Part shown: one piece after another, positions 25,030 to 32,795 of the stretch | Layout of the letters: each line of letters begins with the position of its first letter | Position numbering within the stretch: position 1 is the stretch's first letter | NCBI RefSeq assembly: GCF_002113885.1 | Contig: NW_018405113.1 | Location: 573,356 to 637,355, forward strand | Source of the DNA: Mizuhopecten yessoensis | Lineage: Eukaryota | Direction of reading: 5' to 3' | Length of the DNA: 64,000 nt | Made by a program: the position numbers and the translations under genes | The notes under the pieces: generated by a model | What the model saw: only the letters and a program-made list of their open reading frames with translations | What the model was told of the DNA's origin: nothing | Database searches by the model: none

Positions 25030-25170
25030 TGCGATTCGCGCGCCATCTTCAACTTCCGGCAAACGTCGTCCAACGTGCGTGCCCTGAAATTGTGCCGGTT
25101 CCTAGTCGTTTTACCGATTTGTACAAACAAAACCGCTGCATTCACATTCAAGACTAGGCTGTACATGAGG
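25030..25170 (+). promoter_or_regulatory. Putative TATA-less housekeeping promoter and non-coding first exon of the SNF gene
   Basis: CpG-rich patch with YY1-type CGCCATCTT (25041-25049) and ETS-type ACTTCCGG (25052-25059). Candidate donor GAG|GTTTGT at 25169/25170. The acceptor TTTTCAG ends at 25578, five nt before the ATG. Confidence 0.6.
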
Positions 25171-25583: not shown

Positions 25584-28500
25584 ATGGACATTCGGCCAAA
25601 TCAAACCATTTACATCAACAATCTGAATGAGAAAATCAAGAAAGATGGTAAGCATTACAAACAAGCCTCTTCAAGTGACAACAAGTGTCACCATAATAAA
25701 TCTTTAAAAATTCCAAATAAAGTAAGCGACATCAGAAGATATGTTGTTAATATGCCTCTATACCAAATTTCAATTGAATTTTTATGATCGGTGATGCGGC
25801 ACAGGATGTGCGTATTGACCTGTACAGTTAACAAAGCGTCACCAGACAAAATCTTTGAAAATACTTACTACAGTAAGTGACAACAAGTGATTGATAATAA
25901 AATGAAGTTGAATGCAGGATGTAAACCTATAGCTACGTAAGCAGCTGTTATGCAAAGATGATGTGGAAAATCAAAATCTAGCTAATTGCAACTACAAAGC
26001 TTATTCAACAACTATTAGTGGTTATTTATCATAAATTATATCAAGTCATTTGGATAAATTTGAAGATATTTTGATCTCATAAATAGTCATAATAATGTAA
26101 CACAAGGTTATTTCACACTTAAATTAGCTAAAAGATAGGGGGCTTGAATAATTTGAATTCAAAGATCAAACCTGTATCGGGTCAAAAACAGGCAGCAGCC
26201 CAAAATGTAAGTTCAGTTCTGATTTTGGCCTGTTCAAATTACCTATTTCTTATCGTTCTGATATATAATTTTACAAAAGTGTGTCAGTTAAAAAAGTCAT
26301 TTGGGCTGTTTGAATAGAAGTTACTGAAAAGCCTGCTACACACCCATAATATATTGTTATTTGAGAACTTTTTATGCTACAATGGTATCTGAACCTTGTT
26401 TTTTTAACTTTTTTTCAGACCTCAAGAAATCCCTCTATGCCATTTTCTCCCAGTTTGGACAGATTCTGGACATCGTAGCCATGAAGACACTGAAGATGCG
26501 AGGACAAGCGTTTGTTATATTTAAGGATATAAGCAGTGCGACAAATGCTATACGATCAATGCAGGGATTCCCTTTCTATGACAAACCAATGGTAAAATTT
26601 ATGATAATTAAATTGAACTGCCCGGTGCTTTGAGAGCTTGATGGTGTCGTTCAAACTGTTTGACACTTTAAACTCACTAGGTGGTATGACATGCATTGAT
26701 TGTTGTTGTTTTCATGCTCCAGATCGGTACTATGTTTGTGTCGTATGAGTTATCTGTAAGAAAACTTCTAGTCCCACAATCATGATTAAATGTGACTGAC
26801 ACACTGGTATTTAGCTTATCAAGCTTAAACATGGTTCGCACAGGTCTTGAAAACCCTTGAATTTGATGATTGTCTTGAAAAACCCTTGAATTTGATGATT
26901 GTCTTAAAAAAACCTTGAAAATGACTGTAAGCCTTGAAAACCCCTTGAAAATCAATGGGAGTCCTTGAAAAATCCTTGAAATTCAGAGAAGTTAGTTGGG
27001 TATACGTTTCTGTCATGTTAATTCAGTATTTTGTAAACATTCGTCACAAACAATAATTATTTTTAACACAGATTGATCGTCAAATTGCAGATCGTAAATT
27101 TTAATAATTCCGGAAAATATGTACCAATGAAGTTTCCGGTTTTACTTTTTCAATTTGTATCATTACTGCGTTTGAAATGAGTAAGTCTCATAGTTAAGCG
27201 CCAAAGTGACTGACGGTCATGCGCATTAAGAGTATTGTTAACATGAGGGTAACACGAACGCAAGTGTGTTTTAAACCGCAAATGGCTTCACGATCCCAGA
27301 TTGTTTTGGGTGATGGAGTTAAAGGGTGATAGGAGTCTGACTTCTGCTTTGTGCTCGCTGTGTAACAGAATTATCAATCTCGGCAAGATTGGGGAATGAC
27401 CTTACATCACATATAAAAGTCAAAAACACGTTAATTTTTTTCGGGGACCGCTTCCACTCGGCCTTTGACACTTTTTTAACAAACCTTCTACTTCAATGGT
27501 AAGTACATCGAGACCTACATCGACTGTTCCTAATCCAAATCCGAACACGGATGCCGATGACTTTCCGTCAATACCAGCCCCTCAAGGCCTTGTTGTTCAT
27601 TAAAATCGTTTGTTTATTTTTCAAAATTTGTCTTGAAAAAACCTTGAGAATTCCTTAAATTTTGAGGTCAAAAGTTTGTATGAACCATGTTAAACTTAGT
27701 ACATATATGGTTTGGGCCTTTTTTGGCCCCCAAATCCATCAAAATTAAAAATCTGCAAGAGAACTTTCAAACAAATGTTTCTTCAATTTTGAATACTTTC
27801 CCAGTGCTATTATGTTAACATTTATTTGTGTTTTCAGTTTTGGCTGCCAATGCTGCCATGGTAACCAGGTCATATTTGCATAAATTATTGAAATTTGATT
27901 ATTCAGTCAATTTTGACAGGTTTTCACCTAGTTTTTCTCTTAGCTACCATAGAGCGCACTCTTAAACAAACTTTATATTTCTCCTAAAGATGTATTACAG
28001 GTGCCTACACATTATCCTTTGATATTAATATAAGTTTGTTCAAACATGCGCTCTATAGTTTCTAGGAGGTAAACTATGCAAAATATCACAATATTCACTG
28101 AATATTTTTTCTCTCTATTTTATGCAAATTTAAACTTGTTATCATGGCAACAATAATTAGAAATATAAATAAATATTTTCATAATAGTATTTGGGAAGTA
28201 TTCAAAATTAAAGAAAGTAATTTCAAAGTTCATTTAAAAGTTTTTAATTTTGATGTATTTGGGGGCCAAAACAGGCCCAAACCATGCATAGTCCTTTGAT
28301 AAATAATTGCCACGTTTAAGAAACATGAATATGTCCCTTTTTAACAATAACATATAATTATTTAAATCAATACAATGGTTGTCTTAACATTTTTTAAGAA
28401 CTTGACATTTCTTATTCACTTGCTTTGTTTTCATTACAGAGAATACAATACTCCAAGAAAGACTCTGACATCATCGCTAAAATAAAGGGCACATTTGTTG

Positions 28501-30088
28501 AGCGACCAAAGAGAAAGAAGGAAGAAGAAGGTGAAGTAGCAAAGAAAACAAAGAAAAAGAGTGCTGCACAAAAGTAAGTTTTCACTAGAGATATATAGTT
28601 AAAACAAAATCTAAAATAGTCAGTTATTGAGTGACTTAACGCAATCAAATTTTGAGTGGTTAAATACATACTTCGAAGGGAGCCCCAAGGTCACAAGGCA
28701 GCACTGGAAATAAGAAATTAGTGCTACAAGAAGATACTGATCAACTTGTTAAGTTATGCAGTGATTTTCCAATGCTGTTGAGCATTCACATTCAGTTTTT
28801 GCAGTACTCCTTCACAGTTCACTGACATAAATTGTATTTGTTTGTGTTTTGACAGACAAGCAGCTGCTCCAGCTTTGCCTCAGGTACAACCTGTCCAACA
28901 GATGGCTCCACAAGTCCAGCCTGGTAGGTCTTAACTGAACTTTGTATAACGTGGAAAACGGGTCATAGTTTCAAGAAAATATTCATCTTATATGTAAATC
29001 TTCTCGGCTCGGAGATTAGATTATCAATTTAAAAAATCAAAGTTATTGTGAAACTACGGTTTAAATTAGAATTTTCCAAAGCAAAATTTTGTCTTCTATT
29101 TACAATCTCTGGAAACAGTTCAATCAAACTTAGTTTATTAGGAAATTTTGCTTCTATTAATCAGATTTTATTTTGGGATGGGCACTTCATGAAAATTAAA
29201 GTCATTATCAAGGAGAATTAGTAAAAAAAAATCGAGTCAGGGGAGACAAAAAGAAGTTAAGAAGAAGAGTTTAAGCTTTATTAACTACCTTTAACCACAA
29301 ACAGCTGTGTTTCCTTATAATGTGTGACAGTTTTTATGAATATATATTAATGTGATTTTAATTTTACAATTGAATGTAAATCTATCTTACATTTGTTTAC
29401 ATGTTAACTGATGTTCTTTGTGTCGACAGCCGCCGCTGCCCCACCAACAACTGCTGCCCCAACGTCAACGGCTATACCAGAACAACCACCCAACCAGATC
29501 CTGTTCTTGACCAACCTGCCAGAGGAAACCAACGAAATGATGTTGTCCATGTTGTTCAACCAGTAAGTTACCTATCAATAGTTGTTTGCTATGGACCATA
29601 CATCTTGACAATTTCTTTTCTGGAGTATGGTTTTCAAATTAAGACACTAACCTACATAAAATCTTTTAGAGTTAGAACAAATGTTCCCTGTACAAGTATT
29701 CAGTTCTACTGAGCTACACAATTCTGATACCACACAGGTAAACTATAATTCCTTTAATATGCATTGCTTTTTATACTTTTACTCTTATTGTCCCCTTAGA
29801 ACCTTTCAAAACGTTGTATTGAAATAGAAATGGCCATGTAGATAATTGTATTGCGTATGATATCATATGTAAGAACAAAATAAGTGTTACTAGTCCAATT
29901 GACTAATCCATTTTGATCATCCTTGTAGATTTCCAGGATTCAAGGAAGTGCGTTTAGTGCCAGGTCGACATGACATTGCATTTGTTGAATTTGAAAATGA
30001 GGTTCAATCTGCTGCGGCCAAGGATGCTCTACAGGGCTTCAAGATCACACCCAGCAACGCAATGAAGATTTCGTTTGCAAAGAAATAG
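25584..30088 (+). CDS. snf: U1A/U2B''/SNF family snRNP protein (two RRMs), 243 aa, complete
   Basis: Exons 25584-25647, 26419-26591, 28440-28573, 28856-28923, 29430-29562 and 29929-30088 total 732 nt, all GT-AG with consistent phases. RRM1: [56 protein letters not shown]...[17 protein letters not shown]2: [47 protein letters not shown]...[21 protein letters not shown] is the SNF-type signature rather than vertebrate U1A DILVSRSLKMRGQ. Confidence 0.97.
26830..27689 (+). mobile_element. Internally deleted hAT-like DNA transposon (hAT5-like, 5-bp TSD) in the SNF intron between coding exons 2 and 3
   Basis: TTAAA|CATGGTTCGCACA...TGTATGAACCATG|TTAAA, with subterminal CCTTGAAAA repeats at both ends. 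The internal remnant 27262-27429 translates as [17 protein letters not shown]...[27 protein letters not shown], a BED-like zinc finger interrupted by a stop and a frameshift. Confidence 0.8.
27707..28285. mobile_element. Foldback MITE (near whole-length inverted repeat) in the same SNF intron
   Basis: Ends ATGGTTTGGGCCTTTTTTGGCCCCCAAATCCATCAAAATTAAAAA and TTTTTAATTTTGATGTATTTGGGGGCCAAAACAGGCCCAAACCAT. Inner arms also pair, e.g. ATAGAGCGCA/TGCGCTCTAT and TTTGCATAAA/TTTATGCAAA. Confidence 0.85.
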
Positions 30089-30615
30089 AAAAAGAAAAAG
30101 GACAAATTGGTGCAAACAATTGTGTGTTAATGGTGTGTGCATGAATGTGTTAGACAGCGACGTGTGAATGCAGTGTTAGAAAATGAAATTAAGAATTCTG
30201 TTTATGGACGAATCTAGTTTAATAGCTTCTCAAATCAGGGATGTCTTCATTTGAAAACAAAATTTTCAACTCGAACATAACTTGTTTTAAAACTACTACA
30301 TTTGTGTCTTTGAATATTTGCAGATCAAATCTGCTTACTTCTACTTCAGACAGATTTGTTTTTCAGTATCAGGATAATATTTGTGCACTCTGCTTTACCC
30401 AGTACGGCTATTAAAAGGTATAATTCCTCCAACTGAAATGCAATTGTTTTGAGAACAAAAAGTGAATCAAATAGAAATTTTATGATACATATTTTGGTTT
30501 GAATTATGAATTTTTAAATGTCTTCCATTGCATTACAACAGATATAATCAGCAATCATCTTTTTTATACATATTTCAGATATCATTGTCCGTTTATTTCA
30601 TTTATTCTCTTCAAT

Positions 30616-30955
30616 CCAGCATTGCATTTTAGCTGGTTGTTTCCATTTTTGATTTTGGATACAATTTGTTTTTGTACAGTGAAACCTGTTTGTTTTGGAC
30701 ATGCCTAGTAATAATCATGTTTTAATACATGACTTTGTGAAAATCTTTGTACAGTTGTAGTACTAGGGCCATAGAACAGAGGATGTGAAACACTATTTCG
30801 TTAGTTAGCTGGCAAGTACCCTATTCTGATGTCTCCTCCTCCTCTCAGAAGAGCTATTGTCATCTAGATGTCGCGGCTAAACAGGTATCACTGTCATTAT
30901 ACAGCATTGCACACAGGCTGTTTCCTTGTTGACCTCCGGCATTGCACCAGGCCGG
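30616..30955 (+). promoter_or_regulatory. Three U1 stem-loop II-like hairpins (putative SNF/U1A binding sites) in the SNF 3' UTR
   Basis: CCAGC-ATTGCATTTTA-GCTGG (30616-30636), ACAGC-ATTGCACACAG-GCTGT (30901-30921) and CCGGC-ATTGCACCAG-GCCGG (30936-30955). Each has a perfect 5-bp stem, a C-G closing pair and AUUGCAY at the 5' side of a 10-11 nt loop. Confidence 0.75.
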
Positions 30956-31071
30956 TACTGTTGTTGTATTTGATGGCCGTGTTGTGCTGGACATTACCAG
31001 GTATCCCTAGCCTTGCACCCTAGTCGGGGGTGTCTAGTAATGTACAGACGACATTGGGTCACAAGACTACT

Positions 31072-31112
31072 AATAAATGTGAAACAAAAACATCACCTTT
31101 TTCGTGTTTTTC
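31072..31112 (+). terminator. Poly(A) signal of the SNF gene
   Basis: AATAAA at 31072-31077, upstream TGTA at 31041 and a downstream U/GU-rich tract (TTTTTCGTGTTTTT) at ~31098-31111. Confidence 0.65.
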
Positions 31113-31882
31113 CTCAATAGTCCATCAAGATGATACATGGTATTATGTGTCTGTCTATTCTTAAATAGTATTCTCATCCAGATCGTGGCATCTTATACAT
31201 GCATTATTGACATACTAGACAAAGAGTCAGGGTCACAAATTGTGGTCAGAGTTTGAGTCGCTTTGATTTTATAATGTCTTAACTAGAAATTTCATACCTT
31301 TATGCATTACTTCATTATAAGTAAAATTCTTAATGAATTTTTAGCATTGAGAAAAACAATGTACATTTGTGTGTCAATCTGCCAATAATAAGAATTGAAC
31401 ATTTTGACAATATTTATCAATATCAAACTATTTATATGGTTCATTTAGATAAAACAATAAATTTAGTATTAAGACTCAAAACTACACTATGAATATGCAG
31501 ATAGAAGGATGATTAAAAAAAGAGTTATTTCCCTTTGGCAATAAGCCTTTAAAATTGGGTACTGGCCATCAAAGGATGACTAAAAACGATCCTGTTAAGG
31601 TCAGGAAATTGTGTGAAAATTCATAACATTCTTTTCAATTAACTTTTGCAATAATATACTGAAAAAAATTTGCTTCAAGGCAGTTAAAACATCCTTTACA
31701 ACTTGGAAACTCTATCTGTAGAAAAAAAATGGATCTTACTGATTTTGTGCTTTCCCACATATTGAAAGATATTAAAAATACATTGTCATTATCATTATAA
31801 GTGGTTCATAGCCATCCTCGTTACTCCAGAGGTTTCACACACTTTTGCTCTCTGCACCCCTGGACTAGGTCATATCAAAATC

Positions 31883-31952
31883 GAAGACTGCGGCTGCCTT
31901 GTGGATGAGACGAGAAGACTGCGGCTGCCTTGTGGATAAGACGAGAAGACTG
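31883..31952. repeat. 31-bp direct repeat, ~2.3 copies
   Basis: GAAGACTGCGGCTGCCTTGTGGAT(G/A)AGACGA twice, followed by a partial GAAGACTG. Confidence 0.85.
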
Positions 31953-32723
31953 GGTTGATTTTTTGATGTATAACAAAAGATTCTCGCCCTCATGTAGCAG
32001 TAAAATTGATTGATTTTGAAGTCGGGTGTTTCTGTGGCTCCACTGTAATCTTCAAAGGACAGGTTGCTTTTAGAGATCCATATAGTCTAGATTAATGAGA
32101 TTCGGCTTGTTGTTTTCTTGGTTAAATGTCTATAAAGAATGTTCAAATGAATTTCCTTGATCCATTTTCAAGAGTGCAGAAGTCAAATTTCTTGTTTTAA
32201 ATACCTTTAGGGTGTGAGTAACAATATTTGTCCTATAGGTTGTTTAAGCAAAGGGCTATCAAGTATTCAAACGAATGACTTGGCATATTTTCAAGGTCAA
32301 ATGTATTAATACATAATTTTTTTTTAAATTCCTATAAAGATCTATGCGGTCTAGAGTAATAGTATTTGGCTATCAAGCTTAAGTGAGTGAATTTGGTCAC
32401 GGAAGTGGTGTTAAAAAGCATATTTTGAGCTATGCAGGAACATTGAGCCTCTTGTTTGGTGATGATTTGTGATAGTCATACATTTGAGTTACTGTTGGAA
32501 GTTTTGTGTTTATTCACATCCAGGTGGAATGAGGTGTGATGAGAATTTATCTGATGGACCTTTTCTCTAGATCACTCCTATTTGGCTTTATGGAAACATT
32601 TTCTAACAATGTACATTTTGTTGTTGCAATAATGCGAGTTTAACAGCATTTATTTATTGATTATTTTGTTTACGAGGTTATTGAAAATGAATGGGGAAAG
32701 GATGGTAAAAGATGATAAAAATT

Positions 32724-32795
32724 AGGGGACACCCGGGTTCGAACCAGGGACCTCTCGATCTGCAGTCGAATGCTCTACCACTGAGCTATATCCCC
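32724..32795 (-). tRNA. trnC-GCA: tRNA-Cys (anticodon GCA), intronless
   Basis: Reverse complement GGGGATATAGCTCAGTGGTAGAGCATTCGACTGCAGATCGAGAGGTCCCTGGTTCGAACCCGGGTGTCCCCT: a 72-nt cloverleaf with intact A and B boxes and U73. A T5 Pol III terminator follows at 32717-32721. Confidence 0.97.

Follow-up and report, generated by a model that had tools for sequence, protein, structure and literature searches.

Does the SNF gene of the scallop Mizuhopecten yessoensis sense its own protein through copies of a U1 snRNA hairpin carried in its mRNA? U1A autoregulation is a textbook case. The question was raised by a first-pass annotation of the 64-kb window analysed here (64,000 nucleotides of contig NW_018405113.1, to which all coordinates refer), which reported an array of three mimics of U1 snRNA stem-loop II (SLII) in the SNF 3' UTR and proposed that free SNF is sensed there through a fold different from the vertebrate polyadenylation inhibition element (PIE).

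That the gene is SNF was borne out by searching its protein one exon at a time: RRM_1 domains were found (Pfam), the best PDB sequence matches were U1A/SNF (E 7e-30), and the closest named proteins among the matches listed were scallop SNFs (Mizuhopecten, then Pecten, Argopecten and Ylistrum), with one SNF-type protein per scallop species among those matches. All parts of the gene lie on the plus strand. Coding exon 1 (25584-25647) holds the ATG at 25584 and the start of RRM1; it was placed by sequence, by its letters in the loose RNA end before 26418 and by scallop SNF protein matches. Exon 2 (26419-26591; Pfam RRM_1, PDB matches and junction reads) encodes the RRM1 core, and exon 3 (28440-28573; junction reads and alignment with a bird U1A) the end of RRM1 and a basic stretch at the place of the vertebrate motif (ERDRKREKRKPK) that inhibits poly(A) polymerase (PAP). 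Exon 4 (28856-28923) encodes linker and exon 5 (29430-29562) linker and the start of RRM2, both supported by junction reads. The coding part of the last exon (29929-30088; domain search, RNA reads and scallop SNF matches) encodes RRM2 and ends in a TAG stop at 30086-30088. The exon lengths total 243 codons plus stop, the same as in Mizuhopecten and Pecten SNF. The beta2/loop-3 sequence in exon 2, VAMKT, is of the VALKT type and not LVSRS; VALKT is the pre-duplication type and LVSRS that of vertebrate U1A (PMC4114683). A short stretch about 450 nt upstream of the ATG (25043-25160) is conserved with Pecten and is probably a first non-coding exon or a promoter. High-copy repeats occupy 26800-28390 in intron 2 and 31770-32170 downstream of the gene (very high contig depth, with reads continuing into unlike sequence), and a tRNA gene lies on the minus strand at 32724-32795 (Rfam RF00005, 67.5 bits). 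In Lingula, Owenia and Ixodes a Vps26-family gene lies upstream of SNF in head-to-head orientation (L088, L089 and L091); tblastx of the 3-kb flanks gave no such match in the window.

Transcript evidence came from three raw RNA-seq runs, whose libraries are apparently unstranded. Every SNF intron was backed by junction reads. RNA depth was unbroken from the last exon across all hairpins to about 31.1 kb, dropped in the 30977-31175 bin and was zero from 31176; one spliced contig ran from exon 3 to 31188, spanning 29929-31188. The 3' UTR is thus about 1.0 kb long (30089 to about 31100, the 3' end being approximate), and an AATAAA at 31072-31077, kept in Pecten and lying in the bin in which RNA depth ends, is the probable poly(A) signal. 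The hairpins therefore belong to the mRNA, and an mRNA end before 30616 was checked and ruled out. A short isoform ending at the ATTAAA at 30410 was likewise ruled out, RNA depth being no lower after it than before, and no junction within the 3' UTR was seen in the three runs. None of the variants listed from these runs fell within a hairpin. A 35-nt insertion allele is present at 30297 in two of the three runs, and further UTR variants (30262, 30272, 30604, 30716, 30791 and 31067) all lie outside the hairpins.

The three hairpins were confirmed at their positions; each stem has five Watson-Crick pairs with C-G next to the loop, and each loop begins with AUUGCAY: site 1 at 30616-30636 (11-nt loop 30621-30631, AUUGCAU), site 2 at 30901-30921 (11-nt loop 30906-30916, AUUGCAC) and site 3 at 30936-30955 (canonical 10-nt loop 30941-30950). 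The distal two are 14 nt apart, as annotated. Their supposed identity of architecture holds for stem, closing pair and AUUGCAY, but two loops have 11 nt and not the canonical 10, and site 1 has U at position 7. The count of three proved too low. A fourth site (31011-31023) had been missed, in which the top of a long imperfect stem (30991-31043 in the minimum free energy (MFE) fold) is closed by C31011-G31023 and carries an 11-nt CUUGCAC loop (31012-31022); the 3' end of this stem is 28 nt upstream of AATAAA. All four scallop sites, spread over 430 nt, thus have the C-G closing pair, with loops of 11, 11, 10 and 11 nt. AUUGCAC from loop position 1 is exact in sites 2 and 3, and sites 1 and 4 deviate by U7 and C1 respectively.

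Under a strict descriptor, which demanded a C-G closing pair, a loop of 9-13 nt beginning with AUUGCAY and at least five Watson-Crick pairs, sites 1-3 were the only matches on both strands of the 64-kb window (128 kb). One strict hairpin appeared in 9 of 20,000 dinucleotide shuffles of the 1-kb UTR and in 13 of 300 shuffles of the whole window, and two appeared in none of either. The 7-mer by itself occurs often (41 in the window vs. 31 expected), so the non-random part is the architecture and the clustering. In most contexts the predicted stem probabilities of sites 1 and 2 were high; that for the top of site 4 was about 0.5, and the stem of site 3 depended on context, another fold competing with it, at a cost of 3-5 kcal/mol, when more flanking sequence is included. 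The three distal loops are predicted to be opened simultaneously at a cost of about 5 kcal/mol, which nanomolar binding could pay for. Global folding stability of the region was not exceptional (z -0.2 to -1.9).

In Pecten maximus all four sites are retained with order and spacing unchanged, and identity is 83-87% over the hairpins vs. 39-45% in the UTR between them. Site 1 has a canonical 10-nt AUUGCAC loop in Pecten within an island of 87% identity, site 2 is identical, site 3 is retained with one G-C to G-U change, and site 4 is retained with a better paired upper stem. The stem differences had been read as compensatory. Across taxa the stems do covary (see below), but the three scallop stems are paralogous copies and the changes between scallop orthologues are one-sided and pairing-neutral (G-C to G-U), so the real evidence of covariation comes from other taxa. 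Just past the stop codon, the block 30104-30180 is 74% identical to Pecten and contains TTGGTGCAA and GTGTGTGCA, 8-nt complements of the loops of site 3 and site 2. As a general switch, such loop-complementary sequences were rejected: GTGCAA was 2-fold above a crude shuffle, but no excess was present in the antisense control (6 in 69 kb, equal to the background rate).

The comparison was then extended to 70 de-duplicated SNF 3' regions from metagenomes and named genomes (up to 1.6 kb each, 69 kb in total). Locus L061, which ends like a mammal/human-type U1A and is possibly human, took no part in the comparison, and two fish U1A loci were left out of the statistics; the controls (603 kb) were antisense, upstream and far downstream sequence and the rest of the window. 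On the sense strand AUUGCAC occurred 84 times in 69 kb (12 per 10 kb) vs. 56 times in the controls (0.9 per 10 kb), a 13-fold enrichment, and it was preceded by C in 81 of 84 cases vs. 19 of 56 in the controls (Fisher p 2e-16). C-G-closed stems of at least 4 bp were formed at 55 sites vs. one in the controls, with loops mostly of 10 nt (37) or 11 nt (17). At the four positions below the closing pair, taken with no stem filter, 206 of 300 cells were Watson-Crick vs. 106 with arms shuffled between sites (reached in 0 of 5000 shuffles); with one site per locus the figures were 72 of 116 vs. 38 (0 of 5000). These enrichment and covariation p-values are optimistic because the loci are related to one another. 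All four pair types occur in the stems across taxa, and UTRs of different phyla shared no 14-mers beyond the de-duplication threshold. The covariation anticipated across invertebrate SNF 3' UTRs is therefore present. At least two sites were found in 22 of the 35 site-bearing regions; the other half of the 70 regions, many of them short contigs, had no site.

Among named taxa, the oyster Saccostrea has four sites (one with CUUGCAC), Octopus one, the brachiopod Lingula three, the annelid Owenia four to five, the hemichordate Ptychodera six and the sand fly Phlebotomus one. In the lamprey Lethenteron one perfect hairpin lies 1.48 kb past the stop, in a candidate UTR. Loci placed by best match had two to three sites (gastropod-like), three bulged sites (heterodont-clam-like), one or three (copepod-like) and three to five (others). 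A locus with a divergent SNF (L094), which we take to be probably cnidarian, has six AUUGCAC, five preceded by C and one with a U-G closing pair. The tick Ixodes had no site within 1.6 kb. Long stretches (up to 1.6 kb) in termite-like, wasp-like and several annelid-like loci were also without sites, pointing to losses or to sites farther away. Arrays often consist of lineage-specific repeated units, e.g. the duplicated units in L019 and L049, so that single hairpins come and go but the feature itself endures. Absence of the hairpins from orthologous UTRs was thus looked for, and they are present in Pecten and in other taxa. The system, which the annotation had framed for molluscs, is not mollusc-specific and is wider than the vertebrates, reaching oyster, brachiopod, annelid, hemichordate, insect and a probable cnidarian; sites in so many invertebrate phyla support the older or wider origin that had been suggested.

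Other arrangements of the box were also observed. Three Daphnia-type loci (L026, L064 and L065), with 90-98% identity to D. pulex, have two AUUGCAC boxes at a distance of 24-32 nt that are predicted to form head-to-tail bulges with a 5-bp helix between them. This PIE-like fold emerges when the boxes are constrained to stay open and lies 3-4 kcal/mol above the MFE; the element sits 59-105 nt past the stop and is missed by Rfam. Locus L006 has a similar two-box arrangement adjoining AATAAA. In clam-like and copepod-like loci (L001, L008, L015 and L023) C-AUUGCAC is followed by purine-rich GAGAC or GGGGAC with no contiguous stem, a third architecture. In sand-fly SNF (L093:3675-3720) an AATAAA 18 nt past the stop lies inside the 5' arm of a long stem bearing the single AUUGCAC loop; burying the signal in this predicted stem would be a direct way to block 3'-end processing. 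The Daphnia-type genes also gave a weak SNORD23-like box C/D snoRNA match (L064:594-700 and L065:1822-1928; E 0.06-0.13, below the gathering score), which, lying upstream of the last exon, is probably intronic.

The closest known system is the vertebrate PIE, whose Rfam family is presumably the one named U1A_PIE. As in vertebrate U1A, the scallop sites lie in the 3' UTR of the binding protein's own gene, mimic the U1 SLII site and present at least two AUUGCAC-type boxes after C upstream of the poly(A) signal. Unlike the PIE, which is one double internal loop of about 47-50 nt, they are separate hairpins, four over 430 nt; scallop-type sites stand at no evidently fixed distance from the poly(A) signal across taxa, their host is a dual-function, presumably unduplicated SNF (VAMKT), and their function is putative. 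Head-to-tail asymmetric internal loops in one compact structure are absent from scallop and approximately present in L026, L064 and L065. The window had no match to the Rfam PIE or U1 families at the gathering threshold. Among 16 loci from invertebrates and fish the PIE family gave none at E<=1, a search that had no positive control because sequence for the two fish loci runs out within 300 nt past the stop. The scallop element is therefore not a PIE member, given the missing double internal loop and the missing Rfam match, though it is PIE-like in logic. The claim of a fold other than PIE stands for the scallop, but not for invertebrates at large, in view of the PIE-like fold in Daphnia.

With U1 SLII itself the scallop sites share AUUGCAC from loop position 1, a loop of 10-11 nt, the C-G closing pair and a free stem sequence (PMC5992148, PMC4114683). 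They differ in lying in an mRNA, in being present in several copies, in the deviations of two of them (U7; C1) and in belonging to no snRNA gene. Other U1A-bound 3' UTR elements (the PIE-like element of SMN and SL2 reporters) are alike in that free U1A acts on 3' UTR sites (PMC9977717, PMC9136276); they are mammalian trans targets and not cases of invertebrate self-regulation. As to U1 itself, two 5'-splice-site-like CAGGTATC motifs (30882-30889 and 30998-31005) lie beside the scallop sites and are base-paired in predicted folds. A bipartite U1 site in the human U1A 3' UTR was reportedly described by Guan et al. in 2007 (cited in PMC5071671), and the scallop motifs recall it. A role of these motifs as U1 sites, or as donors of a 3' UTR intron leading to nonsense-mediated decay (NMD), was rejected, as they are not conserved in Pecten (one retains GT but changes, the other loses GT) and no junction reads were seen in the three RNA runs; an intron may exist that is spliced solely when SNF is in excess and whose product NMD then removes. 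Pecten retains a small hairpin of 4 bp (about 30881-30894) in which the first motif lies. In the pre-duplication lamprey gene (L085), within the stretch 1447-1495 nt past the stop, the perfect SLII-type hairpin lies 14-30 nt downstream of two 5'-splice-site-like motifs, one of them a perfect GGUAAGU. The arrangement could combine sites for U1 and U1A, or a UTR intron could begin there.

What would these sites do? We propose that SNF is normally consumed by U1 stem-loop II and, with U2A', by U2 stem-loop IV (SLIV), and that surplus SNF would bind through RRM1 to up to four SLII copies in its own 3' UTR; loading of several SNF molecules would lower the output of SNF mRNA or protein. SNF-type RRM1 recognises the C-G closing pair and C7 of SLII without need of U2A' (PMC5992148), and the reconstructed ancestral RRM1 (Urb) has an affinity of 1.2 nM for SLII and also retrieves an mRNA whose 3' UTR contains a single SLII (PMC5145212). 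Because of such published nanomolar binding, also inside an mRNA 3' UTR, it is very likely, and we would be surprised otherwise, that SNF in surplus binds the sites of its own mRNA in vivo. Sites 4 and 1 are probably weaker, since A1C weakens binding and a change at position 7 is tolerated by the pre-duplication protein (PMC4114683). Negative feedback on SNF through these sites is likely, by analogy with vertebrate U1A on the PIE. Counting against it are the several lineages with a single site or none in 1.6 kb, the competing fold of site 3 and the departure of sites 1 and 4 from the best loop sequence.

The likeliest route of such feedback would be interference with nuclear 3'-end formation. 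In vertebrates, two U1A molecules on the PIE inhibit PAP through residues 103-119 and the PAP C-terminus (PMC5071671, PMC6884704), and this inhibition requires two or more sites (PMC5071671). In the scallop, clustered basic linkers might likewise inhibit PAP, or a bound hairpin might block the poly(A) signal or cleavage site. This route is favoured by the prevalence of at least two sites per UTR, by a last site 46-61 nt upstream of AAUAAA in this scallop, Pecten, oyster and Owenia, by the buried AAUAAA of the sand fly, by the PIE geometry in Daphnia and by the basic patch of the scallop linker. That patch lies at the same place as U1A 103-119, with partial similarity only and more acidic residues. 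Proximity to AAUAAA over 23 loci gave a permutation p of 0.04-0.16 in three tests, and the distance to AAUAAA appears not to be fixed across taxa. The scallop's own PAP gene lies outside the window. The 20 C-terminal residues of PAP are reportedly conserved among vertebrates but not flies, and human HeLa and 293T cells expressed a reporter more strongly when its 3' UTR held a single U1 SL2 hairpin (PMC9136276). The seemingly unfixed distance, a PAP tail not conserved in flies and the raised reporter output speak against a simple PIE-like route, and we give the nuclear 3'-end or PAP route as a whole about an even chance.

The strongest competitor is a sub-case of the same explanation, with the same binding and negative feedback acting after 3'-end formation, through export, deadenylation, decay or translational repression. 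It would suit the wide spread of sites (0.4-1.5 kb of UTR for scallop, Owenia and Ptychodera) at no fixed poly(A) distance, a PAP tail that is not conserved in flies (PMC9136276) and the single-site lineages, which are unable to bring two U1A-type motifs together. U1A-family proteins, however, are mainly nuclear, the last site lies 46-61 nt from AAUAAA or overlaps it in several taxa, and the Daphnia fold mimics the geometry of the PIE; we regard a later step as a real but minority possibility, at roughly one chance in four. Less probable again is a positive or logistic effect, in which SNF would stabilise its own mRNA, promote its 3' processing, or store and hand over newly made SNF. The reporter hairpin that raised HeLa/293T expression has the same simple fold as the scallop sites, and knock-down lowers most U1A-dependent genes (PMC9136276). 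Against this, the only proven self-site in the U1A/SNF family represses, arrays of three to six sites suggest a threshold sensor, and positive feedback would be expected to destabilise the level of a spliceosome subunit needed in stoichiometric amounts; we consider such a role unlikely.

It is more unlikely still that the readers of the sites are SNF acting with U2A', or SNF associated with snRNPs, and that the sites balance U1 and U2 snRNP components rather than the level of SNF alone. SNF does serve both snRNPs, and the 11-nt loops (17 of 61) are close to the size of the SLIV loop (PMC4114683), but the C-G closing pair and C7 are SLII features bound by SNF without U2A' (PMC5992148), and no SLIV-type AUUGCAG..UACC loops were seen in scallop. 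Chance, or relics of a repeat or of U1 snRNA fragments, could be suspected from a core that is merely a 7-mer on a short stem and from arrays made of duplicated units (L019, L049), but this reading is refuted by the shuffles, the 70-region enrichment (55 vs. 1, strand-specific) and the covariation test, with the Pecten identity islands (83-87% in a UTR otherwise 39-45% identical), the different stems of each phylum and the missing Rfam U1 match also against it, and has next to no probability left.

Negative feedback by surplus SNF through SLII mimics is thus the preferred reading, and the sites indicate that the RNA half of the U1A circuit is present, on a presumably unduplicated SNF gene, in most sampled invertebrate phyla, and so predates or parallels the U1A/U2B'' split. 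The reviews consulted describe autoregulation for vertebrate U1A only, and full-text literature searches, whose coverage stopped short of several primary papers, yielded no description of such elements in invertebrates; an earlier mention is improbable, though by no means negligibly so. SNF is the single ancestral protein and has been independently duplicated at least 22 times (PMC9887622). Arabidopsis U1A does not bind its own UTR, autoregulation being reportedly absent there (PMC5829640). Given similar hairpins in the SNF gene of many invertebrate phyla, the feedback loop, whose descriptions are confined to vertebrates, probably dates back much further. The element would either predate the jawed-vertebrate U1A/U2B'' duplication or have arisen repeatedly under the same pressure, and the vertebrate PIE would be its compact two-site version. 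More tentatively, and at somewhat less than even odds, SNF self-regulation through SLII mimics may be an ancestral animal trait (bilaterians and a probable cnidarian), undescribed outside jawed vertebrates, that is carried by hairpin arrays, by single poly(A)-occluding hairpins or by a convergent PIE-like fold, and that works without the vertebrate PAP tail and hence by a new mechanism.

The finding yields a simple motif, missed by Rfam, for which genomes can be searched, and recasts the PIE as one solution among several. The animals sampled here offer a natural series (one to six hairpins, bulged variants, a PIE-like fold and apparent losses) for testing how the dosage of one protein feeding two snRNPs is set, whether cooperativity needs the geometry of the PIE and whether PAP inhibition is ancient.
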